Shown: positions 13 to 63,589, numbered from the stretch's first letter. The stretch is 64,000 nucleotides of DNA from Orbicella franksi (GCA_964199315.1 OZ116701.1:29760001-29824000); one strand, 5' to 3'. The notes: generated by a model from the letters alone, not told the origin. Numbers and translations are program-made.

Positions 13-774
13 CTCGTGTCATTTAAAGTGAATCCTTACACGTGGCATCCGAAATCTAGAGATATTAAATCTTCTGTTCTCGACGTAACGTTAAAAAACG
101 TCACCTCAGGAAAACCGCTCCATGTGGAGGGCCTCACCAAACCCGTGGAAATGTACATTAAGAACTGGCAACGTGAAAAAGAAGAGAATCTCGAGAAACA
201 GAAGCCACAGCGAGAGTTCTATGTTAAACCAAGTCCCTCAGACTCTATAAAAAACATGCGCTATCACAAGATTTTTCTCCCTTATGGCGATGCCGAGGCA
301 AATATTAGGATCATACCGGCAAATAACCAGGAACTTGAAATATACATCAGATACAAAGCAAGACCTACACCGGCAGAAAATAACTTTGCAACGATTGTCC
401 CGAACTTTTCCTCCTGCTTTAGCTACACGGAACACGATGGATTCTTCGACTGCCAATCCGATCCTTATCTGTTTACTATATCACCAAAAATAACCGGACA
501 CACAGGTACTCACTTTCTGGGTATTCGTTACGTTGTAAAATCCATCGAGAAGAACAATACGAAAACCGATACACGCAGAAGAAGGAGATGTCGTGATACC
601 AGCGGTCGTCAGAAACGGTCATGCGTAGAGGTGAAGAGTCCTCCATCTGTGGAAAATACTGGGAGGTTAGAGTTCCAGAATGGTTCTGACGTAAAGTATG
701 ATCTGTTTGTTACCATGGGAGCATGTATGTATTGGTCAGTGGAGGACGACGAGTGGACCAGCAGAGGGTGTCAG
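13..774 (+). CDS. Gene A exon: GAIN B-subdomain with twin furin-like sites and first half of GPS
   Basis: Acceptor ttttttag|CTC at 12/13, donor CAG|gtatat at 774; ORF 16..801. Confidence 0.9.
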
Positions 775-3700
775 GTATATAAAGTTTCATGCATTGCATG
801 AGGCATGTACTGGTGTACTCAGTATGTCCAATTTGCCGAACAGCTCTACTCTTTTAAGGCTATTAAGACAGCCCTAGTGTTCTGTGCAGCGTACTGGAAA
901 TATGCCTCAGAAATGAATTGTTTCATTTCGATTCTTCCAAATAACACCTGCAACGTTCTTAAGATTGCAGATTAGTGGGATAGTGGGTCCTAAGAAGTCT
1001 TGTAATAAGCATATTGCATGCAACAGTCGGCTGCTAAGATTCCTTCTACGCCTATCCTTGGGCCAGACTGAGAGCAATTTTTTCGTCTTGAAGTTGTTAA
1101 AAAATTATCGATTTTCGGTTGGGGGTTCTGGTAAGTGCTTGCGTGGTAAGTACAAGTCCGATGGATAGAAAACTCAGAAACTTCGCTCTTGGTTAGATGA
1201 AAATTGCCATTATGTTTTGCTTTTTGTGGCTTTCGCCTTTTCAAATCATTTCTCTCTTTCAGGCATTAATGTATCAAATCACTCTGGCTCTTAACTCATT
1301 CTCAATCAATTCATTGTTAGATTCTTTTCACCCACTGAAAATTAAAGGTCACCAATTTATCCAAGGAAGGATTTCGCTAATTGAGAAAACATTTGGTAAT
1401 GAGCTTCTCGTTCAATTAACAGTTCATTTTAATCTTTTATCTTTCAAAAGGTTGGCAGTCAGGCTACACCAGCTAAACTTCATTGTTTATGTACTCACCT
1501 GTCTGCATTTGGTGGAGACTTATTTGTGGCGCCAAATCCAATCGACTTTGACAAAGTTTTCGCTGAGTTTGGGAAACTGGGCGAAACTGGGAACTTTGTC
1601 GTCTTGTCCTTTGTTTGCGTGGTGTTTGGACTGTATGCCATTGGTCTTGTTTTCGCGAGAAGAGCTGATAAGAAAGATGATTTACAGGTACCAGATCAAA
1701 CTTTTCTCCCTTATAGACCTCGTATATATCGTTTTACTTCTTCTGATTTTCTCGTGTGAGACACACTTGCCTGCTTGCTTTCACTCTGGACAGGGCTGTC
1801 TAGGTTGCATCACTGGCCGGGATCATGCTTACTATGCAACTTAAGTGTCCTTAAATAAGCGGACGCTGAACTTGCATAGCACCTCTCCGCCCAGGCTCTC
1901 CACATGTATTTTCAATTTTAAAAAGTAATCAGCTATCGGTTTATTCACTTAAACTAGTTAGCTTTAGAGTGATTTCTTTTACTTCTGGAGTAAAAGAAAT
2001 GGTCATTTAGGTCTTTGCATCTTTGTTCGCAGTTCAAATATATGATCTTTCATATATTTATCTCCATGGAGGAGTGAAACGATATGGTCAAATCCGGAAA
2101 TTTAGGGAAAAAAATCTGGTGGCTTTTCAAAATAAAAGATTAGAGCTTCAGTTTTAGAGAGATATCAGTATCTAATTTTTCCTAACAAAATAAAAGTAGC
2201 ATCAATACATTTTTTTAAAAGCAGAAAATAAATACACAAAACAATCAAAGCACCAAATCCAGCCTGAGACTAAATCATTCTCAGCTGAAAATTAAATACT
2301 AAATTGTTCATAACCAAAACAAAGAAAGACAAACACGCAAGAATAAACAAGCAATAATGGCCAATTAATGAAAGTAATGGATTACCGCAACTTATTTAGG
2401 AAGAAAAGTACGTATGAATATCGGTATCGAGAAATATTTACATTTCGAAGAAGGGTTTGAAAAAGACCAAACCAACGTCATGCAAATAAGGAGGGAATTT
2501 CTGAGCTTCCGTTACAATAAACTATATTCATTCATTTCTATATTTCAATTTTCTGCTTTAAGGTTGCACCGAACATCCATCTCAAGCCAAGAGGTGACTG
2601 TACTTACTCTTACGACATCTCCATCCAAACAGGTATCTGGAGAAACTGTGGAACCACAGCGAACGTGACTATCATCCTTTTTGGTGAGAACGGGTGTACG
2701 CCCCCAATTCTGTTAACACAAAGTCAGCTAGAAAAGAAGTTCTTCGCTCGAGGAAGTGTAAACACATTCACTCTTCACCTTTCAGAATCCCTAGGCTCGT
2801 TGTTCAAAATTAAAATCTGGCATGACAACTCAGGAGAAAGTCCGGCATGGTTTTTCCATCAGGTGTTGGTCACCTGCAATGGAACTGACGATAAGTGGTA
2901 TTTTCTTGGCAACAGATGGCTTGCTCTTGAGAAAGGCGACGGCAAGATCGAGGTCGAGATCAGATGCGCGGGAAAAAAAGAATCCTTATCTTTCAGTAAT
3001 CTGTTCTATTTTAGGGGCGCCAAAACTCTTGGCGAGAAGCACCTATGGTTGTCGTTGTTCACTAAAGCTCCTCACAACACTTTCACACGATGTCAACGTC
3101 TTTCGTGCTGCCTTTCAATCTTGTTTGCAGCTATGGTTACCAACGCCATGTTTTACAAACAGGGCATTGAACCCGAAGACACGTTCAGACTTGGCCCTAT
3201 TCGGCTATCGTGGACTCAGATCAAAATAGGGCTCCAGAGTGGGCTCGTTTCCATACCTGTCAACGCCCTCGTTGTTGCAATATTTAGGAATATAAAGCCA
3301 CCCGACTCGAAAGAAGGTGACCGTCACGAAGTCAACGACGATGGAGAGAAACCGACTGGCTGCTTCCCTCGTTTCTGTGTTTATGCTGGCTGGGCCCTTT
3401 GTCTTATGACATCATTGGTGTCCGCTGCCTTCGTTGTTTTCTACAGCCTTATGTGGGGAAAAGAAGTAGCCAATCAGTGGCTTACTTCTGTCATGATCTC
3501 GTTTTTCCAGGACATAATATTGATTCAGCCAGTTAAAGTAGTGATTGTGGTATCGCTGTTGTCACTCATCATTAAAAAGCCTATCGAAAACGACGAAGTT
3601 TATGGGCAAGGGCACTCCAATCAAAATATGGATAAGAAAATCATTTCCTATCCTCTAAGAGAGGAAGAACTGCACAAGGTACGCTCTGTGAGCGTTTTAA

Positions 3701-6700
3701 AGAGTAGATTTATCAAGGCAGTGACAGAAATGGTCATCTTTGCTTTGTTCATATTTCTTCTAATGATGGTGTGTTACGGTAACCGTGACAGTAAGAGATA
3801 TGCACTCACAGAGGCAGTAAAGCACGTCTTCATACAATTTGACAAGGTATGGTGTTGTCTATTACAATAGTAGTACAATAGTCCATGGTGCAACCGCGTA
3901 GCTAAGATGGGACGCACAACTGTCAGCAAGTGCACAAAATCACTCCCTAGTTGAATTGATGTGGAGAAGCCAAACATTTTCCCCAGGGTACGTTCACTGA
4001 CTGTCTAACGTGACCATATATCAAGTTATATGAACACTCGGCAGCTAATCTTTATTTTTAGTTATATCTCTGTTTTTGTATAATCAGTGAGAAATGTCTT
4101 GAATGACTGAGATGGGTCTGATGTGTTCTTAAGAAAGTCAGTTCTTTGACAGGGATTGATTAATGTTGGGGCGCAAGTTTTTTGTATCGAACGAAAACGT
4201 TTTAGCAGTGTGATAAACTTGTTGACTAAACAATTAGCGGTTTTCACATTTCTGGAAGTATTCTATACGTTATATTTCTTAAGCTATGACTTAAATGAGT
4301 TATGGATGCTACTTACGTCTAACAGGTAGATAGCATAGAGTCCTTCTGGATTTGGACGAGAGAAAATCTCGTGCCAGGCCTTTACGACGTCAAGTGGTAC
4401 AATGGAAAGCCCTTTTCTTACAAGGAAGGGTTTATCCGCAACAGAGAGGCGTTCATGGTAGGAATGCCGAGACTTAGGCAAAAGAGATTTAAAAAGGGTA
4501 AGTGACTCAAGCAGTTTTTTTAAATAGGTTCTGTTCTGCAGGTGTCCAGCCTAAATGATAGTGTGGTGGATTCCAAACGGAAAAGTCTGATCAGAGTTTC
4601 GGCTAGCGACGTTCTGTTGTCAGTGTTCGTCAATAGTACCAGGCAATGTTAGTAAATTTTAGGGCAATCTGAAAGTACTTCGGAGGAAATAGGTGTGTTC
4701 AATTCATTGCAAGTTCCAGAAACCATCATTAAGCATCAGCACCGACCGAGAAGCCATCTAAAAGTTTAATACATTGGAGCTAAAATTATTGACGATATGT
4801 TTAGCAGAAATGTAGTGAGATTCCAAAGCATATTCTCAGTACAATCATGACCTTCCTAAACTTGCAAGATCGTTACCATGTCGTCCAAAAGCACTCTTCA
4901 GTTTGTCATATAGGACGTATTTTTCGAATCCCAAAAAAGACCTCATGACATTATTCGAATTTCTTTCTGAGGTAGGCATATTTTGAATCAGTGGATCGAG
5001 CTAGGAATGACGACAATAGCCCCGTTTTGATTTTTGAATGCCACACCGACAATCTAATAATGGGAAGGCAGCGGGGAGCACGGATTTTCAACATAAAAAA
5101 AAAGCAGGAGGCTTGTACTGTAGATAGTACTTTCCAGAATTTTTTCAGAAGACATCACTTCTGTAGATAGTCATCACATAAAATGGGAGGTGGCTTCCGT
5201 TTTTCCAAGAACTATTTTTTTCGCTATAGATATTTTCTTTCACTTTTCATCTTTTAATTCTCAGACGCCAACTGTAAGATAACTCCTATTGAGCCACAAG
5301 TTGCCCGGCAGTTTCCTCGATGCATATCACACCTCAGCTCAAGCACTGAAGACAGAACTAAGTATCACTTGCGAAAATGGATTCCAGTCCACAATCACAG
5401 CGAATTCGAACAGCAATTCAAACTACTCTATCTCTGTCCCAGGCCCTGGCGTTATGAAACGGCCGAAGAGTTAAAAACGTTGTCGTTCCAGGGTTTGATG
5501 TCAACATATTCGGGCGGCGGTTTCATCGCTGATCTTGGTTACAACACAGAAGATGCGCTACGTGTAATCGACAACTTAGAAATAAATGATTGGATTGATA
5601 ATATGACGGCTGCTGTCTTCGTAGAATTCACCATTTATCAGCCAGCCAGTTCTTTATTCAGTGCTGTGAAGTTCTTGTTTGAGAGGTTTCCAAGTGGAGG
5701 AACAAACACCATAACAGAGGTCAAAACGTTAACGGTTTACTCACCCAAGGATCCGACCTTCCGTGGCCTTTACGAGACTTGCCATTTATTGTTTATGTTA
5801 CTTATTCTCATTTGTGTGGCTACCGAAATTGGCAAAGTATACCAAGAAGGCTGCACGTATTTAAAAAAGCCCTTGAGTTGGCTCGAAATGGTCCTTTTAA
5901 CAAGCTCCTTCGTTTCCCTGGCCATGTTTTTCTTAAAAGAAACATACACGAGCGAATTCATTGCCAAGGTCCAGGAAAATCCATTTCAAAGCTGGAGTAT
6001 GGACAACATTGCATTGTGGTCAGATCTCGAAGTGACGCTGTTGGCATTTGTTGTGTTTTTAGTGACGATGAAACTCCTGAGGATTATTCGCTTCAACCCA
6101 CACATTATTCAAATGAGAATGACTCTAGCCATAGCTTCGAAGCACTTTTTGTCGTTTACGTTCGCTTTTATGACAATAATCACTGCATACGTCTCGCTTA
6201 CAGTATTAACGTTCGGGAGAAATGTTTATGAATACCGTTCATTTGCACGATCATTCAGCTCTATTCTGTTGATGCTAATTGGCTCCAAAGCACCTTTCCA
6301 CGAACTGCAAGAAGTCAGTATTATTATTGGACCTTTTTTCGTCTTAGCTTACATGGTGACCATAGTAATGATCTTTCTGAACATGTTCTTGGCTATACTT
6401 AATGACGCTTACACGGAGTCTCGTGAAACTGGACAAAAAGGGCTCGAAGACTTAAAGCTTTCGAAATACATCAAGGTGAAAACTAAGAAAGTCGCCAAGA
6501 AGACCAAAGTGGAGGTAATTAAAGTTCTTCAAGCACTTCCTCAATTAGTACGTCAAAGGCAGCCGACAACTGCCGTGACATTTGAGGACGAGGTTACAAA
6601 TGCAAGTTCTTCTGATGAAAAGGACGAGGACTCTGCATTTCGAGAAGAAGATAACCCTTCCCTCACCGATATAATAAGATTGCTCAGCGACATAAGAGAT

Positions 6701-6955
6701 GATATTGACAATTCTGTACTGTCCATCGACGATGTCGTTCCCATGGTAACGATTCATGACCCAGACAAAAAATGGTATCGAACTGGTGGTTCTTTGGACG
6801 ATTTTCGATTTTATTCATCTTCTTCTTTGTTCAGCAGTGACTCAGACAGTGCAATTTCAAAATCAGACAACTTTATTTACCACGGAAACAAATACATCAA
6901 TCTGATTGACGAATGGAATCGTAAAAATGCTGAAATGGGCGAAACATTCGTTTAG
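13..6955 (+). CDS. PKD1L2: Gene A: polycystin-1-like receptor/channel (PKD1L2-like; exact orthology not established), 5'-partial, last 5 exons
   Basis: Exons 13-774, 1451-1687, 2563-3846, 4326-4497, 5265-6955 join in frame through GT-AG sites (4146 nt, 1381 aa + stop). Motifs: GPS CMYW..WTSRGC..HCLCTHL/S, PLAT (IQTG..GTTANV, WHDNSG, NRWLA), TOP, channel with S6 LNMFLAILNDAY. Upstream exons lie outside the window. Confidence 0.93.
1451..1687 (+). CDS. Gene A exon: GPS cleavage motif (HL/S) and TM1
   Basis: aaag|GTTGGC...TTACAG|gtac; VGSQATPAKLHCLCTHLSAFGGDLFVAPNP; 237 nt, same length as in genes B and D. Confidence 0.92.
2563..3846 (+). CDS. Gene A exon: PLAT/LH2 domain and TM2-TM6
   Basis: ORF 2665..3870 extended to acceptor ttaag|GTT; donor AAG|gtatgg. 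Confidence 0.92.
4326..4497 (+). CDS. Gene A exon: start of the extracellular TOP domain
   Basis: VDSIESFWIWTRENLVPGLYDVKWYNG..GMPRLRQKR; not in the ORF track; 172 nt, phase 0 to 1, as in gene B. Confidence 0.9.
5265..6955 (+). CDS. Gene A last exon: rest of TOP, S2-S6 channel, cytoplasmic tail
   Basis: Acceptor ttctcag|AC; ORF 5369..6955 with GGGFIADLG, WIDNMTAAVFVEFTIY, KLLRIIRFN. Confidence 0.93.
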
Positions 6956-7081
6956 TGACTTTGTTTAAAGGAATAATTAAACTTATTTCTTGATGAATGC
7001 TAAGATCACTTTTATGGTCTGCTTTTAGTAACAAAAAAGACACGCATGTAAAGTGAAAGCTTAAACTAAGACCTTGTGGTC

Positions 7082-7087
7082 AATAAA
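7082..7087 (+). promoter_or_regulatory. Candidate polyadenylation signal of gene A
   Basis: AATAAA about 125 nt after the stop codon; supported by position only. Confidence 0.4.
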
Positions 7088-7105
7088 GGACTGGATAAAT
7101 ATGGG

Positions 7106-7220
7106 TTATTGACCAAGCGAGAGGTCAAGATTGCTGGATATTGGCCAAGTTCTTTTTTTTTTCCTTTTGCGTGCTTATGGACCTACACAGAGTCGAGGTC
7201 CATAAACATACAAAGAAAGG

Positions 7221-7252
<32 letters not shown>

Positions 7253-7410
7253 AAGCTTGGTCAATAAAGGATTTTATTACATGGAAAAAGACCACTATTT
7301 TCCTGCGGGATACAGCGGGTAATCCCGAGTGGGCAAGATGGCGCCAACCTACCGTCTTGGGTAGCCAATCACAACACAAGATTCGGTTCATCTCGCCCGC
7401 TCACGGGACT
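7106..7410. mobile_element. Palindromic MITE-like repeat with 3' extension
   Basis: Arms ttattgaccaagc..ggtcaagattgctggatattggcc (from 7106) and ggccaatatccagccatcttgacc..gcttggtcaataa (to 7267); inner hairpin ttatggacct/aggtccataa; the right boundary is approximate. Confidence 0.7.
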
Positions 7411-8910
7411 GTTGGCTTCCCTGGGCTTCCTGGCCTTGTACATTGATATGTTTAAATAAATTTATAAAGGGCAAAAAAATTAAAGCAAGAACAAGAACAT
7501 TGCAATTGTATAGGAAAAGGCAATTACAATTTACCTTTTCATAAAGCCTCACTCTATTTCAAAACACAGAACAGAAACCAACGATAATAATTGGGCTTTA
7601 ATTCAAGTCACTTTCCTGTGTGCTGAAAAGCAACAGGACAGTTAAAAACTGCTTGCGAAGGCATTGCTCAGTTTGTTACAGGCGTACCTATGGGGGTATT
7701 CTGTGATTTCAGTATTGTTAAAAGCCGTTAATTTTCAATAAACTGCTGGCAATGATATCCTGCGCTACTGTAGGCACGAAAACCTACCGGCAGCACTGGC
7801 TACATAAGCTTACATAGAAACCGTCTTTAAAAGAGAGGAATGCGAGTGAGTCACGACTTATCACACTGAGAACAATACGTCCTACACATTACCTCTTTTA
7901 ATTGCATTTTGCCTTACTTATTAATGTATCATGCCACTAATTAGGAAAATAACCCGGAGAATATCGGCAAGTCGGCTAGCAAGGTAAGTGTTTCCATATT
8001 CTTTACGGTTTCTTTTCAGTTAACATGATGAAGGTTTTTGCAGAGTGTTGACAATATAACGGCACATATAGGATTTATAAATACTTCGGTAATTAATCCC
8101 GCTCGATGTGAGCAATACATGGCGGAGATCTTTCATCCACACTGTAGTGGGTAGATCATCTGTTGAAACACTGAAGTTTGGAGTAGTTCACAATACTCAA
8201 GTAAACGTTTCAATAAAATAATAAAACGGCGCTCCGACTCGCGATTGTTGGAAAGACAAAAGTCATCTCGTTCAGTCATGGAACCGCAATAGACGAACGA
8301 TGAAAATGCATTTAGCTCTACATTAGTCAGTTTGTACTACACTGAAAAGGCTACATATAACAAATAACAACCTATGACTGTTTTCTGCTCTGTCTTGTGA
8401 GTGTCTTCGATCAACGGCAAACGCAAATCAATAGGGGAATAGGGGAGAACGCGTCCCTAAATCAATTTATTTACAGTAACAGAATTATGTGTGGTACTGA
8501 CGTATTTAAGTGCATTCAAAAAATAATGTCGTCTTTTCGTTTCATCTTTTATGTATCGCTTTCAGCATATGAAAGAAGGCGTCTGTAGGTATATGCCGTT
8601 AACTGATTTCCGGAATATCATATTTTTTCTTCCTCTTGGTCAAGTTTTGGATAAGTCCTCTGTTATTCTCCACAGTACGTCCTATATTGTCAAAATATAA
8701 ATAATTGTTTTAAAATAAAAGGAATTACAAAACATGCATACTCAAGAAGATTAGCATTCTACCCAGCCAGTTTTAAGACCTTTAAAATTACAAATAATAA
8801 TCGAATTTCGCTTGTTTCCCCTTTCAAAACTTCCCTCTTTAAGTAATGTGTTTAGTTTATTGAGAAAACAGTATTTGTCGTAGTACTCTAGGTAAATATA
8901 ATTTTGGCAT

Positions 8911-9088
8911 ATAGAGTGTTTTCACGTGACGTCACGGCAGCCATATTGGTGTTCCAAAACAATGCAACAGCGATCTTGTTGGTGTACCAAACCAATCCTG
9001 TGAGAGTTGAACTCTTTTCTGTGTAAACACTTTATTTTGTTCCAATAAATTTGCATGGGTGTTGGCCACCTGAGTGAAAACGCTCTAT
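8911..9088. mobile_element. MITE with terminal inverted repeats
   Basis: atagagtgttttcac (8911-8925) / gtgaaaacgctctat (9074-9088); non-coding interior. Confidence 0.75.
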
Positions 9089-9240
9089 TACATCGTTTTC
9101 TTTGCTCAAACATCAAACAACCAGGGCTTCAATTTATCTGGCAAATTAAGGAATCTACGTGAATAAATTCTCCGACGTGGTAAGTTCTGAGTGCCAGAAA
9201 GAAGTGCGAGAACTACTTACATTATGCTTTGCGTTCTTAT

Positions 9241-9535
9241 GGAGATGATAACCTTCCAGATATGTATTTAGTTAGTTTATTCCCACTTCGCCTGTAAATA
9301 AGAAGACAATAAGAAGTCATCTTTTATGTTTTACACGCACATACAGGCCACTCTGCACACGAGAGTTGTCTCTGCATACGAGACAGAATTGCGACTAGTT
9401 ATATCGTGCTTTGCTTTCTTACGGAAATGATAATCTTCCAGATATGTATATTTTTCTTTCTCACTTCGCCTGTAAATAAGAAGACAATAAGAAGTCATCT
9501 TTTATGTTTTACACGCACATACAGTCCACTCTGGA
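9241..9535. repeat. Direct duplication of about 115 bp, period about 182 bp
   Basis: gatgataa.cttccagatatgtat..cacttcgcctgtaaataagaagacaataagaagtcatcttttatgttttacacgcacatacag.ccactctg occurs from 9241 and again from 9423. Confidence 0.9.
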
Positions 9536-10002
9536 CAACTATGGGCTATTTACACGCACACCGTCCAAAACCTCTTATTCGTAAGTTATGAGAAATTAAT
9601 ATAAACCACAACATGATACAATTAAGGTTTCCGCGGATATTTTCAGTTGTTCACGCCTACTAAATGTAGCAAATTTTTTTGGAGGAATTTTCTGGAGGAA
9701 AAATCGTTTAAAATTACCCGTTAATTAGTTTTGCCTGTACCCCGGCAAAAGTGTTAGATTTACAAGTCTTCCTAAAAGCTTTCTATTGTTGACGCAGGGA
9801 AAAAAGAGCAGTATTCAAACTGAAATAGGGGCTTATGCAGACGGAAATCATGCTCGAATGGGAAAGTCTGAAGGCTGATTAAAATAACAAAAGAAACTTT
9901 TTATTACATAAATCCAGTAAAGGTGCCAAATGAACACTCTGTACGGGTTTCGGAAAGTAATGTTCTATAAATCCCGCATTATTCAATTCTTCTTGCATTC
10001 GC

Positions 10003-10464
10003 TTAAGGTAGCTCAAAAAACTTTCCAGTACTTTACAAGACTGGTGGACGGATGTACGCTATAACCACTTTTAATCAGTTGATTCTACGTTCATAGTATC
10101 ATTAAAATTCCCAATCAAATTACTTAAATTTTCGAAAACTTAAGATGGCTTTGATCTCCCATATACAAAATGTTTGCAAACTCTGCCAAACGTTGCATCT
10201 TATCCTGCTTACAAAAATTCGATAATAAAACAATGGGTTTTACGGTGTGGATTTTGTAATATGAGTATTTAAAGCTAAAATGAAGGGTTTTTTAGCAAGT
10301 CATACTGTTGCTATGAGAACCTTTTTTGTCATGAAAAACAAACCGTGTTCACCAATGATTGGGCAGATTGATGCCATGATTGTAGCATCAACTGATAAAG
10401 AGTGGTTATAATGACCCATCAAAATCTAAGTCTTGGAAAGCGCTGGAAACTGTTTTGAACTTAA
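10003..10464. mobile_element. TTAA-flanked non-autonomous DNA transposon (Kolobok-like)
   Basis: TTAA+ggtagctcaaaaaactttccagtacttt at left; aaagcgctggaaactgttttgaac+TTAA at right (imperfect TIR). TTAA target with purine-purine terminus is the Kolobok pattern. Confidence 0.6.
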
Positions 10465-13400
10465 AGGGTGTTAATGAGTAGATTTTGTTCCAGACTCTCC
10501 CCGTTTAAGGTGTACGTTAAATGTTGCGTGAAGCCTCGTTTTCATTTAATGACCAGTCAGTGTAGAAGAAATAAAGTAACTTGTTTCCGAGGCATTAATC
10601 GTCTGGCTTAACACGAAATATAACACGACTTTTGAGGATCAATTCCCTGCAGTATTGAATTACTTGAAATTGACTCCAAAGAAACGGAATTGGAACACAG
10701 AACATTTTACCACGAATTGCAGGGAAACTCTTGTTGGCGTAATTGTTTGCAATTTGCAACTCCATTGGCTTCCGTGCCGGGCATTACTGAGATATTTGAG
10801 AGCAGCACGGTAATGTAAATTGAATAACACATTTAATGGTACTGAGTAAAACTAAGGCAGATCGGACACTAAATGCCAAGAAAAAGTTAATTCAATACTT
10901 CGCTGGCGCTTTTTTCAGAGAACAACATGAAATCCAGACAGCTTCTGTGCTTCAACATGTGTTCTGTCATACCTGCGCTTGAAGAAAATTTGAAGCTGAA
11001 AATCATATCATTTTTTTTTTCTTTTTTCAATGTCATTCATACTTTCAAATTTTAATTCCTGTAAAGTAATCAAGCGGATACTCGCCCCTGAAACAAGGGA
11101 AAAGGAAGCATTTTATCTCTGGATCGTCGCTGCCTCGTTCATTTTGAACTGGAGAAACTGCAGATCAATATTCCAGTGTATTTCTCATGTAGATATATAA
11201 GGGAAATGTGGTAATTTTACATAGATATTAGGAGTAGAAAATGAATGCGTGGAAACATCTCTGTTTAAATGAAAAAGCGTAAGACTCAACGTTTCATGAG
11301 CAGAACATGAGCGCAATTATTTATGTACAAAATAGAAACTCGGAAAACATTATACGGCCTACGAATTACTTATTCACTTCAGCTGTGATATATCGATTTT
11401 GTTTTTAAAGCCCCGTAATCTCTGTTTAAGTCATAAATTACTGCAATCTTTCAGCTGTTTAACTCCCGTTGAGAAATTATGTGCTTGCAATTGATACGTG
11501 GTTTGCATCGTCATGGATCATAATTATGGCCGTTCCAGAAATTGTCAGTCTCAAACTTGCTAAAATGTGGAATATTTAATTCAATTTAATTGGAGATCTC
11601 GTTTTTAGACGCGTTTGTCGTGTGGCAATCAATTTATGTTTGGTCCAACTGTTACTGTTCTAAACTTGACTTCAATTAATTTGCTATTCATACTTTAATG
11701 TTCCCACTCAAGTCCAGGCAGGGATCTCTAACTTCTAATTAAAAACGTATTAAATTCTGTATAGTGTTATGTAATGTTCAGGCCGTAGTAAAGTTGAGTC
11801 GCACTGAGCACAATTTTTAATTTCATTTTCTGTAGCGGTTAGAACTTGGAAGACAACTAGAGTTCTCCTGAATTGATAAATAAATCAATCAAGTTTCGGT
11901 CTAGTATTACATAAAATTAATTAATTTATGTAAACGAGACAACTCTGAATCTATTTTGACCCAAGCGCTCTCCGGCACTCAGACCTTCTTAGTATGACAC
12001 GTTCTGTATGCATTCAAAAATGTTCCCGGGCTGCTTGACGAGAAAGATGATGACAGTGCTTAATTTCCTGAATAAAAACAACAGACAAAAGTAACTTTCG
12101 TCAAAAATAATGAAAACCGCGCAAGAAAATATTACGTATGTCTCCTGCAACGATTTATATTTACCGGTCATTACCACACCTTTTGTTGCATGATTGCAGC
12201 AAATAGCAGGTGATATTTGTGTAGATTTAAACAGTTAACCACGAACAGACGACAGGTATTGTCTACGTTTACACTGAAGTCATTCCCCTCCAAGAAATCG
12301 TCCTTCGATATCTTTAATATTTTGGAAAAGGTAGGCGGCTTTGAGTCGGGTACGTTTAAGGCATTTTGTCTGGTTTATTCATAATTCATTCCAGGAAAAT
12401 CATTTGAAGGCATAAACATTATAATTCTAAAGAAATCGACGCTATACAATGTAATTATGAACGTTCCAAAAGGCCGAGCTCCATACAATTACATATTTAT
12501 AGGACACAGAGAAAAAAAAAAAAACACTCGTATAAGACGATTTTCAGTCGGTTAACGAAATACCGTCCAAAAATTAGATGATTAATCTATAAAGTCCTCC
12601 GAAAGTCTCAGATTGTAAAATTTATTCAGAAGACCATGATAATTTGTCCTTGTTGTATGCATTTATTTTACGTTAATCCTTATTGCACCTGATTCAAGAC
12701 TGATATATTTTAATTTTAGAGTTATTATTTTTATTTTCTTGAAGTGTAGATTCGTATGCTACAATGTTAAACAACGAGAGAGAACACTGAATTGCCTGCT
12801 CACTGTAAACAATAACGTTAAAAGGAAGCAGCGGAAAATAGATGTCAGTTAGACTTAGCCATAGAACCTTAGATCCAAATTTCTGTAAAGTCATAACATA
12901 TTGTGACCGCGATCAGATTTCACATTAGGCTGTCTGACACTTTTCGCCTCAATACAAGCCTACACGTAAATTAATATATACTCTACTGATTATTTAGGAA
13001 ATTCAGGCTATATAGACTCCAACCAGAACTTCGAGCCGACAAAGTCGTCCCAAGCATTGAATAATAGGCATACTGTGATTGGTCAAAAAGCTGTGGCCGT
13101 TTGTGTCAACAGACCAGACCATCCACTAAATACAGTACAGCGTTCCCTAGCTTGCGTCAATTCTCAATGCAAACACAAAATAACTACTTCGAACGTTGGT
13201 AAAATTGCCAAAATGTTCTTATCTTTTTCCCGATCACTGGTAGACACACAGAGATATATTAGTTTGTTAGTTGAAGTTTATAACCATTGCCTTCAGCAAT
13301 GGTGAGTCCAGTCTAAAAAAAAATTTTATATTTTTCTACTAGCCTTCATTAAACAAGTCCTAGAATAGGGATAGGTTCATTATAAAAATTGAAAAGTGAT

Positions 13401-16400
13401 AACGTTGAAAAATGCCAGTGTCATCTTGCCCGAAACTTTTGTAATTTTTCGCAAGATGACAAATTAGATTTCAGTCTTCAATTTTTGTTTTCTTTTGAAC
13501 TTTTATATTTATTCAAGTGTAACGCATCAACCACTGATAACAAGTTTCTTTCGTGTTTGTTCATCCCATAGAGATTTTCAGGAGAACATTTGTGACAACA
13601 CAAAGATCCCCTTAACCTTACCGTGTGTGGACACAGAGATATTTTGTGTTATTTTGTTCTTATTATCATTATTTCTTCAAGACACAAAACAGGCGTAAAA
13701 TCATAAACTTGTAAACAAGGTTTTCTAATCAGCTATTTCCATTGTTGTTTGTTTGCTATTCCTACATATTAAGTTAGCAAATTTATTGTGTCAAAAGGAA
13801 GCAAAAATGAGTAGCATTACCCTGCGGCTTCATGTTTGATCATTAATTTATATTTCAATTATTTCTCAAGACAACTTTGCCTGAATAGTTGTGGTACAAT
13901 AGCTGACGCCAACAGGTACCTGTAGTTCACTTTACGAGAACATTTCAATATGTATGCCTTTTTTTTCCTTTTCATTTCTTTATTTTAGAATTAACTTTGT
14001 ATAAGCAATTTCATACCATTCCTTAAGGAATGAAACAAATGATTTACTCCTCTAATGAAAACTGAAACAAGAAAAGCATGAATAATAAATTAACAACGAG
14101 CTGAGACATTATAATCCTCAGTCCCGTCGCGGATTTTATAGTTTCTATTCGATTTCAATACTTTGGACTTTCTCATTGACTGTACTTCGCTCGTCCAATC
14201 AAAAACGAGAATTTCTATCTATGATAAAAAAATCTTGAAGTTCGCGTCACCAGCAATAACTCATAATGAAATGTCTTGTAATAAAAAGTTTTCACGTTAT
14301 TTACACCATTGTTGTGGTAATTAGTACCACGTTTTATACCATGGTTTTTGTGTATATAAGACGTTCATAAGCAGAGCGACACATATGTATACACTTGACC
14401 TTAGAACATATATATATAAAAAATAGTGCCACAGTCGTCGGGCACGAAAGAGGAAAGATACGAAAAAAACAAAAGGTCCAATACCTCAGTGATGTGACTT
14501 GTCATGAATTCATTTCAATTTTAAATAACATGTACTTGGCATTGAAAGAAGTCCAAAGATTATTATCAGCATAAAAGAAGCAAAAGAAGACAGCTGTCTG
14601 TGAAACCCAGGTATGTTTTAACCAAAATCCTCAAAGCTCAAAGCTACATTATAAAGCCACGTCTAACTAATTACTTGTGTCATTTTGCGACTTGCAGAAA
14701 GTTCATTTGTTCTTAATTTCACCACCTAGACGCGTTTTTTCGATATGTAATGTATGTATATGGATCAGAGTTACCTTCAAGACCTAAAGCTTGACTAAAA
14801 CCTTTGAGGAGTGATTTCATCGACTGCAAGGGATAGTTTTCTCGATTTCGCTTAAGATCGAGTAATTTACGTAGCTCAAAAAATAAATGCACAGGTAGAG
14901 CAAAAAATTTTCAGAAACGCGGGATTCGAAATTTGAAGTTCTCAAATGGAAATTAAACAATCGTGAATGATTGTAAGTTTTGTTACGAAGAGTTTCTCTT
15001 CGCAAAATTCAGAGTTTACAGTATACGTAAACTTCTGGCCTGCACACTTCCATAAAGTATAGTAGCAGAAACTGTCTCACAGAACAGTTTTTCGAAATAA
15101 TTAAGACAACTATATTGAGATAATGTCGGTGTTTTATTTCGTTAGTTTATACCTTTGAAATTATTATTTCAGTTTCTTAAACAATTTGCATAAATTATCG
15201 GGTATGCATTTTAAAACGCTGATTTGGTGATAACGGAACCAATATTTCAAATAACGGTGCGGGCTCCCATCAAAAGTTCTGTTCTTGATTTCGAATTGTG
15301 TTAGCTATCTCTTAGGAAAAATTTGCCAGGCTGCTAGTACCAAGAGGGAAGAAATCCTTTTAAATTACGATAATTTATGACTTTTTTAATTTTAACTTTT
15401 GTTGTTCGATGGATAATTCCAACATAATTTTGTTATTTCATTGCAAAACACTAATGGAGATTAGAGTTCGTGAGAACATAGTAAGTTTGACAGCTTGAAG
15501 GCCGTTTTGCTTTGTGTCTTGTATCTAGCTGGAAAAGACAAACAGTTTTATATTATTATTTCTACATTATCATTTTATGATCAGCCAGTTCCTCCAAAAG
15601 GACTGCTAAAATAGATTGTCAAAATAAGACAGTGAGAACGTTCCTGCATTTTTAAAATAGTAATAAATAAGCTAGGAGAACTTGGCTTTAAAATGTAAAA
15701 GAAGTGATTGAAAAGCATTTTGACTAACATCACGTTTTTCCTCATTAGTTGTCCCCCATTGACTTCCCGCGAATAGTTTTCCGTCACGCATGATTTTGAC
15801 GGAGAGGTCTTAATAACAAGATTACCCACATGAAATGGGAAAACCGCGTCGCTATGACGGTAGCTTCGGTTGGCTCGTGCCATTCATTTGTGTTGTGCAA
15901 CCCTGGAGCGAAACAACTAGAACTTTTACTAGTTATGACATTTCTGCCATATCAGTTTGCAGGGGATGTGCATGGATTTGTCCAAAAAAGCAGCAAAGCC
16001 TTCATATTTCCTTTTATGGCTTTAAACCTTGGCATGGCAAATAATTCGTGACTGAAATGTTTCGGTAGACGACTATAACAAGAGAACTTGTAGCACGGTA
16101 AAAATATGCCACATACGACAAGTCTATCAAAATAATTCATGTCCAGCAGATGTGGATGGTGACAGCATAAATTAAGGAGTCAGCACTTATGAATTCTATT
16201 TAAAATCTGAGAATGGAACGAAGCGAAAGGGTAAGCCAATCTAAGCTGAATGTCAAGCGTATTTACCCTGATTGTTAAATAGTGAATAACATACGTATAC
16301 AGCGCATCTCACCAACTTATCCTTGTAGTTTGAGGCGATATCTAGACATATTTTATATCAAATCAGTCATGTCAAGTTTTTAATCCACTTTTAACAGCCC

Positions 16401-21800: not shown

Positions 21801-24800
21801 AATCACCATCGCTCTTTACAGCAGTAACTGCTGTGCTGGAGATCCATTGTTTACGATCCAGCGAACAGGCTCTCTTGACGAAGCTCAAGTCTGTAATGGG
21901 AAACAACTATGAAGGGATATTTGACCCAGGCTTTTTTAGGTCTCAGTATCCAAGTAAGTAAAACGATGACAAATTTAATAATCAATAATGTCTGTTCAAC
22001 CAGAAGACCAGAAAAGAATGATTGAATCTAAAGTCTATGATAATTAATTAATCGACAGAGGAAATCTGCCGAAAGCCGAACGAGAAACTCAATGGGACCA
22101 AACGCCTAGTAAGAGCCTCCTGGCTAATAGCTAAAAACAGATAAACACAGCAATTTGACAAACGCGTTTCAACGATATTCATTTATTCCAAAGGAACTGT
22201 CTTTCTAAGTTAGTCGTTCATTTATAATACCGTATTGATTTTTTATGATGATGAATTTCTAATGGTTGGCCTTAACTGTGCGGAGTTGCTCTTTAATTTT
22301 AGCCTAGATGTGGTCTTCCACAAGGGGTCTTCAATCTGGCCTAAATGGACGACCTTTTTGATAAGAATCGTTTTAAAGTTATTTTTTTTATGAAAATCAT
22401 GATCAGTTCCGTTTTGACTCCGGCTGCGTACCAGAATAGTCCTTTTTTTAGTTGGGCCAACGGGCCGGGGAGAACTCCTTTAAATACAAAAAATGTTAAA
22501 CCCCTTCTTTTCACAGAACGATGTGGATGCGCACCGCCCAAGGCAAGCTTAAAACTTGGGAAAATGATGAAAGACGCCAAGGAAATTTACCTTTCTAAGA
22601 TATTCATGAGACTTCCGCTTCAACTAGAACACTCATGTCAACCAACAACAACTATACTCTACTCCTGGAAATTCTCAAAAATAGACCAGGAAACAGGTTT
22701 GTTTGGACCCTTACAGCCATTCGGCCGAAAGAAAACATTCATCTTACCTTTACGTATGTTTGGCATTGGCTACGCCTATGTTCAATGTGAAGTACAACTT
22801 TCAGGCGATGCTGGCTCTACGACGCTTGCCAATGGCTATATGAGGATTGTTCGTGATCCGCTTGTGGCAATTATTACGGATATAACCGAGACGAGGAGTA
22901 AGATCATGCTAAGTGCGGAAAAATCGTTTGATGCTGGGTTTGGCACACGAGGCCTACAATTTACCTGGTTTTGTAGACTAGCAGGTGAATCGTTCTTAGA
23001 TGTAGCTGAGCGTTACGCAGTCGACGAGTCATTTGGTAGAGTTAAGACAAACACAGGGTGCTTTGGGTATGGACCTGGCAGACTCAATTCTACAGATAAA
23101 GTATTAGTTTTGAACATGGTGGAGATGGTGAAAAGCAAGAAATATATTTTCAAGCTTGTTGTCTACAAAGACGATAGAAATGCGAGTGCAGTGTACGAGT
23201 TAGTAGTAAAACCACTCGCGTCGATCTTTGTTAGGTAAGAATATTAAAGGACCCTACTTAGCCTCCTACTCAGCCATGGTAAAACGAGATCTTATTGCTT
23301 TACTGTAAGTTGTGTTCCTGTAAGTATGTTTAATTATCATTAGTAGCTTCACAGGGATTTCCTTCGTCTCGAAATGCTCCGAATAAAATATAATAGCCAA
23401 ACTCTCTCGAGCAAACAAAAACAAGGGTATGGCTCACAAGGGCCATGAAAATAATTTTTACAGCTATTTTGTATTATAATACCAAGACATTTAATGCCTC
23501 TCCTTAACAACGAACTGAGCAAAATTGAATTTTTTGTTATAAGAGTGCTTCAGTCTCATCGGGTGCGTACCAAACTGTAGGTATGATCAGTGCCAAACAT
23601 CTAGAATTATCCCGATACGGTACTGATTTTTTAGATCTTACGCATGACATCGCTACATGCTCAAAATTCGCCACCAAGCCTCGTTTGAACGAATATTTTT
23701 CAAAATTTCAGCACCTTCGTGTTTTTTATTTGTGGGTATTCTTTCCACCGGCGCTTTAGGATTTTGTTCATGTTATAATTTTATATTTGCATTTTGAACC
23801 GAGGCTAGGCGGTCATGCACAAGGGCTATAATAGCTGTACTGACCAGATACAAGCAAACGCGGGATAGCCTGAGATTTTCAAGGTGAAAAAGTCGTGATG
23901 CTCGTCATCTTGCTTAGGGATATAAATCACTGATTTTGGGTATCAGGACGAAACGCCACTGTTCGTAGCTGTCAAGATATCTTTTGCGTTGCAATCTCCC
24001 CTAGCGGAAGAATAAGCGCTCCTTGCTAAGGATTCCTTTTAAAGAAAGACATGAGGTTGAATATTGTGGGAAAACAAATGGTCGTTCTGAATGTAAATGT
24101 TCATTCTCTAGGTTTCTCCTCTCAGGTTGAAGTTTAGCACTTCAAAGGACAAAGAAAATTACGGCATAGATTGGACAAAAATGTTTTTTTTTTTTTTTTT
24201 TCAACATCATTGTAGTTTACCAAACTAGGTACTGTAGTTTATATTGTTGTTTTCTTCAGATGCATGTCAAATTGTGGTGAAAAGGTTAGTCCGCAAGATG
24301 GATTACTCCTGGAGGCGACGTGCCAAGGAGAAGCCTGCAGCAAAATTTCGAACTACACTTGGAGTTTGCATATTGTTAATCAATCAGTTGACGGCTTTTC
24401 TGTCTCGCCAGTTCATCACGTTAATATTTATCTGCAAATGAACACCAGACGCCTGTTCATTAACGACATTTTCAAATTAGAAGATGACACGAGAAAGCAC
24501 GTTCATTACGCTGTTAAAGCTTCGGTTAAATTAGACGATGGGAAGGAGTTTGATGGTAACTTTTCGTTTATTGTCAACTCGCCTCCAAAAATGTTCTCTG
24601 TAGACGCTAGTTGCCACGTTGTACCGATGAAAGGTGAAGCTATATCAACCGACTTCTCGATCACGTGCTCGGGATGGCATGACGCGGACAAACCGCTGAC
24701 TTATGAGTTCACATACCAAGACAAGTATGGTATGGTAATAATTCAAGCCGGGAGTTTGAACACAGTGACTACAAAACTCCCAGTAGGAGAGGCCTCTAAT

Positions 24801-47900: not shown

Positions 47901-50900
47901 CCAAGATGAAGATTTCTAATCTAAGCAAACCAATAAGAATTCTGTTCTCTAGAGACCCTGACGAAACTAGGGACCAAGGTGCATCTGATGGAATTCTGTT
48001 TCTCAAAAGAAAAGAAATGCGTTATCACAACGTCTCTATTCCTTCTTACGAAGCGGTAGTAACTGTGCGAATTAAGCCTGAGAAGGACATTTCACTGCGC
48101 GTCTACGTCGGGCACTACTCAAGACCAACGCCTCAACACCATGACTTGAACGTGACTCTGCCAAACACCACCCGTTTGACGTGTTCAAATTTTTCCAGGG
48201 AATGGAATGACAGATGTTCGCCTCGTGACCCATATGAATTTGATCTTCTACCCAATGTCACAGGTCATATTGGACGCCATGTTATTGGAGTCGAAATTCT
48301 TGAGGATTCCGTTGAAATCCCCGAGGTGTCTGCAGGAATAGCAGGCAATGATGCAGAGGCTTTAAGAAGACAGACACAGTATTGCGTTAAGGTGAAACCA
48401 GCTCCAACTCCTCTCCCGGTGAAAAAGAACGTGCCTCGCCAATTCGATTCTAAAACGGACGTTAGGTACACATTGTTTGTTACGGTGGGGACCTGCGTAT
48501 TCTGGGACAAACTGAACAAAAAATGGTCAGCACGAGGAATCCAGGTTAGTTTATTTTGCCGTCTAAGGAAGAATCCCACCTCCATCTTCCATCTTAATTT
48601 TGAAAATCGTCTGACAGAAATTGACAAAAGGGTACAGGTGCAACTCATTTGTTACTGCACACTTAAATATATGGAGAGCGAATGAGCACTAGAAAGTGAA
48701 CTCAGAACCCGTCTTTACCGCATTCCATAGCCTCAACGCTGCTTGGACAACCACACTGAAGGGGGTTGCATCTGAAAAGTACAGTTACTTGTCGAAAGCT
48801 ATGAGAAGAAGTAATTTACACATTCTTTGCAAAATCATTGCGTCACCTTTATCCAGTGTAACAAAGATTCACAGTCCAGTCATCGAGAAAATTAGGCTCG
48901 TCAATCTTTGTCTATTTATATAACAAAAAAAAAATACTCAGACAATTACATTGAGAAAGACATTCCAAATATAGTACATTCAAAAATTATTAATCCAAAG
49001 CTAATTTGCTGCGCTATCGATTGTTGGCTTTGTCAATTTCTGTGTGTGATTAATGTGGCTTCAAATTTGGTACAGTCAGTAAAGAACCGCTCTATGTACA
49101 AGACAAGTTAGAGAAAAAAAGATGTAATTCGCACTCAGCATTGATACTGACATAAAAACTGCAATGACTTACAACGTATTTTATGATGACCCGTTTAGGT
49201 TGCTACTGAAAGTAACGAGACGAGGGTCCACTGTCTAACCAATCATCTATCAACATTTTCTGGCGATTTCTATGTGGTTCCCAACAAGATCGACTTCTCC
49301 AAGGTCATAGCAGAAATACCACCCGAAAACTTGGTCGTCCTCTCCACAATTTGCCTAATATTTGTGGTTTACGCTGTTGGTCTTGTGTTTGCTAGAAGGG
49401 CAGACAACAGAGACAAAATGAAGGTAGGTTTTTTTTCTCAGAATGGTGAATTTTGTGTATACCAAGCACTTACTCAACTTGCGACTTCTCCTGATTTTAG
49501 CATCCCTTTTGAGACAAAATAAGAGGTTTGCCACATACACGTAAACAGCTCTCGTAGAATTACTTAGCTATTTATTACTTTTACTCGGTTGGTAAAGGTA
49601 AATTAACCGCCTTAGCAAGTAAATGAAGCTGATGTTCGAGCGTGCCCCCTCAGTCGAAGGAAAGTTATAGCAAGTTTCGTCGTTTAAAAAACTGTAATAT
49701 ATTAAGTCAGGCTTTTGAGCCTAGAACAGCACAGGATTTTCTTTTTACCGTCATGATGTTTTTAGTTTTCTTATCTCCTTATTTCAATTTTAACACAGAT
49801 CGATTGTTCAATCATATCATTCCCTCATCGCGGATGTTGATCACCCAATTTGATCTTAAGAACACTGAGACAATTAGCTCCTAAATAACTATCACTAAAA
49901 ATTAAAACGAATGGTTATTTAATGATTTCATAGCAAAAAATTTGAAAATTTTTTTTTTTTTTTAAATATTCTCTATTTAACAGGTTGTGAACACCAAGGT
50001 GAGTTCTCAGAAAGGAGAACATTCCTGTGCTTATAACTATGAAATATCTATCCAAACCGGAATGTGGCATGATAATGGCACCACTGCTAGCGTCAGTGTA
50101 ATACTTTTCGGTGAAGACGAAATTAGTGATACAATATTATTTATGGACCCCTGGAAGGAAAGGAAACTTTTCACCCGTGGCAGTGTAAACACTTTCAGCT
50201 TCGACATTCCACGTCGACTTGGACAGGTATACAAGGTAAAGATTTGGCACGACAACGGTGGTAAAAGTCCATCGTGGTTTTTGTACGAAGTTGTGGTTAA
50301 AGACGTCTCTACCGACGAAAAATGGCATTTCGTGGCCAACAGATGGCTTGCTGTAGAGAGCGCTGATGGTGCGATCGATGTTGAGATCCAAGCAGCCTCG
50401 AAAAGAGAGCTGACGAGATTCAGCAATTTGTTTCAGTGGCGGGCCGTCACTAACTTTGCAGATAAACATCTGTTTCTCTCAATCTTTGCCAGGCCGCCAC
50501 AGAACCCATTTACACGTTGCCAGCGGCTAACCTGTATGCTGTCAATCATACTGGTTTCTCTAGTAACCAACGCCATGTTTTACCAGTTTAAAAAGACAGA
50601 AGACCCAAGCTCCTTTCAACTAGGACCACTAGAACTGAGCTTGACACAAATCATAATCGGTGTTCAGAGCGGACTCATTGCGCTACCTGTCAACATAGTT
50701 ACAGTGATGATATTTAGGAACATCAAGAGAAACATATCCCCAGATAGCTCTAAAGAGATGGAGACCTCCACTACAGGAAGAAAAAACACCCAGGGCTTCT
50801 TACCTCGCTGGTTTATTGTCGTTGGATGGTTCCTCTGTTTGACAGCTTCAGTTTCGTCGGCAGTGTTTGCGGTTTTGTACAGTTTCGAATGGGGAGCGGA

Positions 50901-63541: not shown

Positions 63542-63589
63542 CTAAAAAGAAAACAAGGAAAATGAAGTAAAACCTGTCATTATTGTTGT

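Follow-up and report, generated by a model that had tools for sequence, protein, structure and literature searches.

A predicted twin-site convertase processing loop inside the GAIN domain of anthozoan PKD1-family receptors

The 64,000-nucleotide stretch of Orbicella franksi DNA analysed here (the window) carries four PKD1-like genes, three on the plus strand (A, B and C) and one on the minus strand (D). All four are tandem PKD1-like or REJ-like receptors; this identity, first read from the DNA itself, is borne out by Pfam domains and by the fold of a homologue's modelled GAIN domain. The REJ domain (PF02010) is encoded by gene B exons at 22345-23235 and 24264-24893 (the REJ region of A and D lies outside the window), and PLAT, Polycystin_dom and PKD_channel (PF01477, PF20519 and PF08016) by gene A exons at 2665-3867 and 5369-6952. 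Genes A, B and D each contain a GPS motif with four cysteines, two tryptophans and the self-cleavage site H-L↓S/T (arrow, scissile bond), laid out alike in all three. The GAIN exons of the four paralogues are only 30-38% identical in pairwise comparison, so the tandem cluster is old rather than the product of recent duplication.

Ahead of the GPS motif, genes A, B and D each encode a short basic cassette. Translation of gene A at 574-624 (plus strand) gives RRRRRCRDTSGRQKRSC, which divides into RRRRR, CRDTSG, RQKR and SC; gene B at 27874-27924 (plus strand) gives RMRRSCTGNGRRKKRSC (RMRR, SCTGNG, RRKKR, SC); and gene D at 62970-63026 (minus strand) gives RPRRSIDCDSRSRRQKRSC (RPRR, SIDCDSRS, RRQKR, SC). 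These are, residue for residue, the strings reported in the initial annotation. The shared pattern is R-x-x-R (site 1), Cys (Cys1), R-x-K-R (site 2) and Ser-Cys (Cys2). All three genes present furin-type R-x-K/R-R motifs, in which P1 and P4 are Arg and P1' is a residue that such enzymes tolerate. The features are as follows.

13-774, plus strand: gene A cassette exon, coding for most of GAIN subdomain B; flanked by acceptor AG (11-12) and donor GT (775-776); modelled with AF2
574-588, plus strand: gene A site 1, RRRRR, furin-type, with Cys1 directly after it
589-591, plus strand: gene A Cys1
607-618, plus strand: gene A site 2, RQKR, followed by Ser at 619-621
622-624, plus strand: gene A Cys2, first residue of the conserved C-V-x-V-K-x-P-P segment
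724-771, plus strand: gene A GPS start, C-x-Y-W ... W ... G-C (first and second GPS cysteines)
1451-1687, plus strand: gene A next exon, with the third and fourth GPS cysteines, the H-L↓S autoproteolysis site, the tethered stalk and the first TM helix
1496-1504, plus strand: gene A HLS, within C-L-C-T-H-L↓S
27379-28086, plus strand: gene B exon homologous to gene A 13-774
27874-27924, plus strand: gene B cassette; RMRR 27874-27885, Cys1 27889-27891, RRKKR 27904-27918, Ser, Cys2 27922-27924
28622-28687, plus strand: start of the gene B GPS exon, C-L-C-T-H-L↓T, with HLT from 28667
48365-48385, plus strand: gene C counterpart, RRQTQYC, without a furin-type motif and without Cys1, Cys2 kept
62808-63542, minus strand: gene D exon homologous to gene A 13-774; 5' boundary approximate
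62970-63026, minus strand: gene D cassette; RPRR 63026-63015, Cys1 63005-63003, RRQKR 62990-62976, Ser, Cys2 62972-62970
62347-62382, minus strand: gene D GPS core, L-C-L-C-N-H-L↓S, with HLS 62367-62359

The three cassettes occupy homologous positions of paralogous exons. Each is followed by C-[VI]-x-V-K-[DS]-P-P; the GPS start, C-x-[YF]-W...W...G-C, lies 34-38 residues beyond Cys2, and the downstream exon holds C-x-C-x-H-L↓S/T. The Pro/Thr-rich linker that had been described between cassette and GPS is evident in B and D but less pronounced in A. The stretch between the two sites contains one Cys in each gene and spans 10-13 residues as encoded (individually 10, 11 and 13); the peptide of 6-8 residues originally proposed is obtained only once the C-terminal basic residues are trimmed.

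Could such strings arise by chance, as functionless low-complexity sequence copied by recent tandem duplication? The tandem paralogues do lie within one 64-kb window, and single R-x-K/R-R strings are frequent in its six frames (97, against 67 in shuffles). The twin pattern, searched as a regular expression in the six-frame translation of the whole window, is found only at the A, B and D loci: three matches, against 0.055 expected (mean of 200 window shuffles). Moreover, the conserved arginines use different codons in genes A, B and D, placing conservation at the level of protein and not of recent gene conversion. Together with the 30-38% identity of the exons, the retention of the motif by anemone-coral orthologues and an approximately 120-fold enrichment in the loop (both described below), this leads us to reject chance and recent duplication as exceedingly improbable.

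A profile of the four GAIN exons was searched against 1.84 billion representative proteins, returning 265 hits (62 with values <1e-30), mostly single-exon fragments from eukaryotic contigs. The closest sequences are fragments from metagenome assemblies, with identities of 89% (to A) and 84% (to B); the closest named proteins are anthozoan, and about 37% identical. One 567 kb contig (L001, from ENA assembly ERZ25067546) encodes at 3887-16339 a protein 89% identical to the gene A cassette exon. The REJ, cassette, PLAT and channel exons of this locus follow gene A's order, and its site 1 reads R-R-R-R-T-C. The locus is probably the gene A orthologue in a related coral.

Profile hits and named full-length proteins together supplied 140 non-redundant segments that reach the GPS start. 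Strict twin sites are present in 65 of these and R-x-x-R plus R-x-K/R-R in 11, for a total of 76 segments with two sites. A further 14 have the arrangement Cys-site 2-Cys without a good site 1, 18 have a single R-x-K/R-R, and 32 have none, mostly because the loop itself is missing. Conservation beyond the locus, which the initial annotation had left to a homologue search, is thus evident in the 76 two-sited segments and the 14 with Cys-site 2-Cys. The motif is also concentrated: in 27 named anthozoan proteins, R-x-K/R-R occurs 46 times within a 55-residue interval spanning the loop, versus 8 times in the other ~32,000 ectodomain residues. This corresponds to a density in the loop about 120 times that in the rest of the ectodomain, and 21 of the 27 proteins have no such motif in the ectodomain outside that interval.

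Some homologues depart from the twin arrangement. In fragment P0080, a unit of the type R-K-R-R-S-C-F-G-K occurs as three tandem copies rather than two, which suggests that the cassette may grow by duplication of a short R-x-K-R-S-C unit. Fragments P0070, P0104, P0108 and P0110 carry a Cys-rich insertion of ~200 residues upstream of the loop, and combine a single R-x-x-R with Cys2 (K-R-x-C-x-V-V-x-E-K-P-P-P). Such clusters are common in metagenome assemblies.

Position frequencies, anchored on the cysteines, were compiled for site 2 (n=114) and site 1 (n=94). P4 is Arg in 86/114 and 75/94 sequences, respectively; P2 is Lys or Arg in 97/114 and 71/94; and P1 is Arg in 89/114 and 72/94. By comparison P3 is free, with entropies of 3.2 bits at site 2 and 3.4 bits at site 1. 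The P1' residue is Ser in 77/114 at site 2, and Ser or Asp at site 1. Beyond site 2, the segment C-[VI]-x-V-K-D-P-P is strongly conserved (Lys 105/114; Pro-Pro 93-108/114), and Cys2 is present in every homologue in which the loop could be anchored. Of the two sites, site 1 is clearly the weaker, being degenerate or missing in about one-quarter of the loop-bearing sequences.

Retention of P4, P2 and P1 with a free P3, at both sites, points to recognition of the furin type; a diffuse basic patch would not need this pattern. We therefore put at rather better than even the prediction, made from sequence patterns and models, that the cassette is a furin-type proprotein-convertase processing loop in subdomain B of anthozoan PKD1-family GAIN domains. 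In its best-supported form, site 2 is the core, site 1 is a frequent second site, and the loop separates the GPS motif from the body of the GAIN domain.

The main rival holds that the loop is never cut. It would instead be a conserved surface loop, polybasic and stapled by a disulfide, with an anionic binding partner, its likeness to a convertase substrate being a by-product of clustered Arg and Lys. The loop is indeed highly basic, and is modelled as a flexible coil leading into the conserved, rigid C-V-x-V-K-D-P-P; moreover, sea-urchin REJ proteins bind a sulfated egg-jelly polysaccharide, though through other domains. Charge, however, cannot explain the register, in which Arg is held at P4 and P1 and Lys or Arg at P2, with P3 varying as freely as any other position in the loop. 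Nor does it account for the small P1' residue (Ser, Asp, Ala or Gly) kept at two separate sites, or for the rarity with which Lys replaces Arg at P1 or P4. Lineages that have lost Cys1 mostly retain one R-x-x-R (14/20), which also counts against this rival. A point in favour of the uncut loop, and one that counts against convertase cleavage, is the presence of Cys at P2' of both sites: this residue and a tight ring are atypical of efficient furin substrates. If Cys1 and Cys2 were to close a ring of 10-11 residues, then the scissile bond of site 2 would be one residue from the closure, which could hinder a protease that binds its substrates extended. On balance we judge an uncut loop improbable. 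Candidates for what it might bind, put forward with equally little confidence, include sulfated glycans, polysaccharides of mucus or matrix, acidic proteins of the skeletal matrix, and a partner subunit.

Site 2 lies between Cys1 and Cys2, whose spacing is 10-11 residues in 80/94 sequences. A second pair lies in a loop ahead of the cassette; it is shared by cassette-bearing homologues, specific to anthozoans, and absent from the deuterostomes examined. In gene A these residues fall within 400-470 (S-S-C ... D-C-Q-S-D-P-Y), and a Cys pair 10-20 residues apart occupies the homologous places in B, C and D. Most loop-bearing sequences (63) have four cysteines in this part: the upstream pair (S-S-C ... 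C) and the cassette pair. P0071 is without the upstream pair yet keeps Cys1 and Cys2, whereas some distant homologues have the upstream pair but no cassette; together with the fixed spacing, these cases favour pairing of Cys1 with Cys2. However, about 20 sequences, including the whole gene C clade, retain Cys2 without Cys1, a poor fit to a simple, obligatory Cys1-Cys2 latch. On pairing, then, the presence and absence patterns are ambiguous. In one orthologue group (P0196, P0199, P0200 and P0203, from Acropora, Montipora, Nematostella and Actinia), Cys2 stands 2-3 residues away from site 2 (R-Q-K-R-S-E-I-C-V-E-F-K-D-P-P); the register of Cys2 thus follows the next strand and not the basic motif.

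These observations bear on a sub-variant of the convertase reading in which site 2 alone is nicked (R-x-K-R↓S-C), the resulting chains stay joined through Cys1-Cys2, and no peptide is excised. Site 1 would then act simply as part of a basic exosite, and basic residues at P6-P14 do help furin. Site 2 is the better conserved, the 14 sequences with Cys-site 2-Cys have no proper site 1, the spacing of the two cysteines is nearly constant (the 80/94 above), and P0071 retains both after losing the upstream pair, as expected of partners. On the other hand, site 1 repeats the pattern of site 2, with P4, P2 and P1 kept and P3 free, in 65-75 of 94 sequences, a more specific pattern than that of a diffuse exosite; and the three tandem R-x-K-R-S-C units of P0080 also speak against this sub-variant. 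We regard the single nick as possible, although doubtful.

Gene C provides a contrast within the cluster. As the initial annotation implied, it is without the cassette: RRQTQYC (48365-48385) includes neither site 1 nor Cys1. In the phylogenetic tree, gene C groups with fragments P0007, P0034 and P0041 (support 99/92), and the sister of this clade, P0021, retains Cys-site 2-Cys. Within the clade both sites and Cys1 have decayed; Cys2, the V-K-V-K-P-x-P segment and H-L↓S are retained. The receptor type thus persists without the cassette, in a clade that has lost the sites and Cys1 but keeps the loop and Cys2. Gene C itself (47906-48547 and 49229-49252) has also lost the second and fourth GPS cysteines (R-G-I-Q and H-C-L-T-N-H-L-S, respectively), with H-L↓S kept.

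All named carriers of the cassette are Anthozoa, comprising stony corals (Stylophora, Montipora, Acropora and Oculina) and sea anemones (Nematostella, Actinia and Actinostola). A maximum-likelihood tree of the GAIN-B segment contains at least two well-supported clades with both anemone and coral members that bear the twin cassette; one unites P0196/P0199 with P0200/P0203, another P0212 with P0209/P0210. Mixed clades in at least two paralogue lineages place the origin of the cassette before the anemone-coral split and before the radiation of the paralogues.

The loop, the basic motifs and both cysteines are absent from 26 vertebrate PKD1L2 and PKD1L3 proteins, from sharks to mammals, and from a crinoid PKD1L2 and a hemichordate REJ-like protein. 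In these deuterostome proteins, a connection of just 12-18 ordinary residues links one strand to the other. The earlier remark that no such cassette was known in vertebrate PKD1-family proteins therefore holds for the 26 PKD1L2 and PKD1L3 proteins sampled by sequence. Aligned by fold, PKDREJ, PKD1L1 and sea-urchin REJ cover 50-90 residues fewer than the query, as does PKD1, for which the comparison is by fold only; for PKDREJ, PKD1L1 and sea-urchin REJ, these shorter spans fit absence of the loop, as judged by fold rather than sequence. The distribution could reflect either a gain in anthozoans or cnidarians, or a loss of the loop in deuterostomes. Clusters named from rotifers, molluscs and flatworms were seen in an ESM Atlas look-up, which returned names only and no sequences.

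Where in the fold does the cassette lie? Two AF2 models were built: the GAIN region of the cassette-bearing Stylophora PKD1L2-like protein P0186 (residues 215-701; 75-row alignment), and the gene A cassette exon alone. The P0186 model has a mean pLDDT of 86.8 and a pTM of 0.80. Among solved structures, Foldseek matched it to the GAIN domains of BAI2, BAI3, latrophilin-1/3, CELSR1, GPR110, GPR126 and CD97; matches were stronger to predicted GAIN regions of human and mouse PKD1L2, PKD1L3, PKDREJ and PKD1L1, and of sea-urchin REJ. A sequence search of the PDB retrieved adhesion GPCR GPS motifs alone; a solved GAIN domain from the PKD1 family was not among the results.

In the P0186 model the cassette (residues 374-390) lies in a coil (361-416) between strands 351-360 and 417-432, the latter a long strand that holds the first GPS Cys. 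Block pLDDT values are 63, 58 and 52 across the cassette, and 75-83 past Cys2. The gene A exon model is similar: the cassette (residues 187-203; pLDDT 54-62) lies in a coil (174-225) bounded by strands 164-173 and 226-235, both with pLDDT >90. Domain content and models thus agree with the original placement of the cassette inside the GAIN domain, just ahead of the GPS motif. Modelling the domain had also been proposed as a check on whether the cassette is a surface loop; it falls in low-confidence coil and not in the core, which is consistent with an exposed, flexible position. Neither a lack of conservation beyond this locus nor burial in the models, each of which would have spoken against the reading, was observed.

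As modelled, the loop is an insertion of about 55 residues in the hairpin that connects the last strand of the GAIN body to the first GPS strand. Beyond it lie only the GPS strands and the stalk strand, so the loop marks the boundary between GAIN body and GPS. The piece from Cys2 to H-L comprises ~70 residues. Because the cassette is N-terminal to the first TM helix and within the GAIN domain, its sites are expected to face the secretory lumen or the extracellular space, given the established orientation of GAIN domains in the PKD1 family and adhesion GPCRs.

These features are consistent with the following sequence of events, whose order is inferred from precedents in polycystin-1, adhesion GPCRs and furin substrates. 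The GAIN domain would fold and cut itself at H-L↓S/T in the endoplasmic reticulum, as polycystin-1 and adhesion GPCRs are known to do. A trans-Golgi convertase would then cut after R-x-K/R-R of site 2 and, in most paralogues, of site 1 too. A two-chain receptor would thereby become a three-chain receptor: a large N-terminal fragment containing REJ and the GAIN body; a piece of ~70 residues made up of the Pro/Thr linker and the GPS strands; and the portion anchored in the membrane. All three would be held by the common GAIN β-sandwich. The 10-13-residue piece between the sites would be released, or would stay attached through a cysteine. If Cys1 and Cys2 form a ring, a cut at site 2 alone would leave the chains linked by the disulfide, and a second cut at site 1 would remove the covalent link. 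The likely consequence would be a threshold for ectodomain shedding that is lowered or regulated.

A more elaborate version assigns a function to each piece. Here the convertase cuts would detach the GPS, a cap over the tethered stalk, and the Cys-containing mini-peptide would serve as a covalent latch, whose removal by the second cut or by thiol exchange would arm release of the ectodomain. We consider this unlikely, the redox-gated step being speculation; to our knowledge, a three-piece GAIN domain with a convertase-detached GPS and a Cys latch has no counterpart in any GAIN-domain protein. Were it true, proteases and redox state would join force in controlling activation or shedding.

GAIN domains govern ectodomain shedding and exposure of the tethered stalk in adhesion GPCRs and polycystins, and the sole cut that we know of inside a GAIN domain is the autoproteolytic one. 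A processing cassette kept for several hundred million years at the GPS boundary would add a second, enzyme-controlled step within the same domain. Paralogues without it, such as gene C, offer a natural system for relating the integrity of the GAIN sandwich to the shedding threshold. Should its sites prove uncut, the cassette would still be a GAIN insertion that is lineage-specific and clearly delimited, and its pattern of conservation would call for another explanation.

Parallels for a doubled or a Cys-flanked site come from proteins of other kinds. In the inhibitory tracts of ENaC alpha and gamma, and in pep27 of RSV F, two polybasic convertase sites bracket a short peptide, and the membrane protein changes its activity once the peptide is removed. 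The ENaC and RSV F peptides have 26-43 residues and no Cys, whereas the coral piece, known from sequence alone, has 10-13 residues and one Cys. In integrin alpha chains, Met, the insulin receptor and some AB toxins, a furin motif lies between two cysteines, so that the nicked chains remain joined by a disulfide. Known nicked loops of this kind span at least 14 residues with the scissile bond well inside; the coral ring would span 10-11, with the cut one residue before the closing Cys.

The SEA domain of GPR126/ADGRG6 contains a furin site (S2), (R/K)-x-K-R, and the halves of this receptor remain associated after the cut (PMC6954182). Like GPR126, the coral receptors combine the GAIN/GPS cut with a separate furin-type site, predicted in the corals. 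As in GPR126 and at Notch S1, the cut would fall in a loop of a folded domain, with the halves staying together until force or ligand intervenes. In contrast, the GPR126 site belongs to a distinct SEA domain, remote from the GPS; the coral site is inside GAIN subdomain B at the GPS boundary, doubled, and flanked by cysteines. Fibrocystin (PKHD1) has a convertase site, KRKR↓N, and its ectodomain is either attached by a disulfide or shed (PMC10579373). It differs in being an unrelated single-pass protein with one site and no GAIN domain, and the coral disulfide is only inferred.

Polycystin-1 and sea-urchin REJ proteins share with the coral genes the REJ region, a GAIN domain with C-x-C-x-H-L↓S/T, PLAT, and 11 TM segments with the polycystin channel. 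In polycystin-1 and suREJ3, the fragments remain non-covalently associated after the GPS cut (PMC1934368, PMC10579373). A literature search on furin or proprotein convertases with GAIN, polycystin-1, cnidarian polycystins and sea-urchin REJ found no convertase site in a GAIN domain or PKD1-family protein, and polycystin-1 and REJ differ from the coral genes in this respect, as far as the literature searched describes them. In coral skeleton proteomes, a PKD1-related ectodomain is present, and the authors of those studies invoke either extracellular cleavage or the GPS cut (PMC3748352, PMC4890752). The cassette would be a further candidate route for release of such ectodomains into the skeleton. 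Convertase processing itself is thus familiar; what is new here is its predicted place in a shed, self-cleaving receptor: inside the GAIN domain, doubled, and flanked by cysteines.
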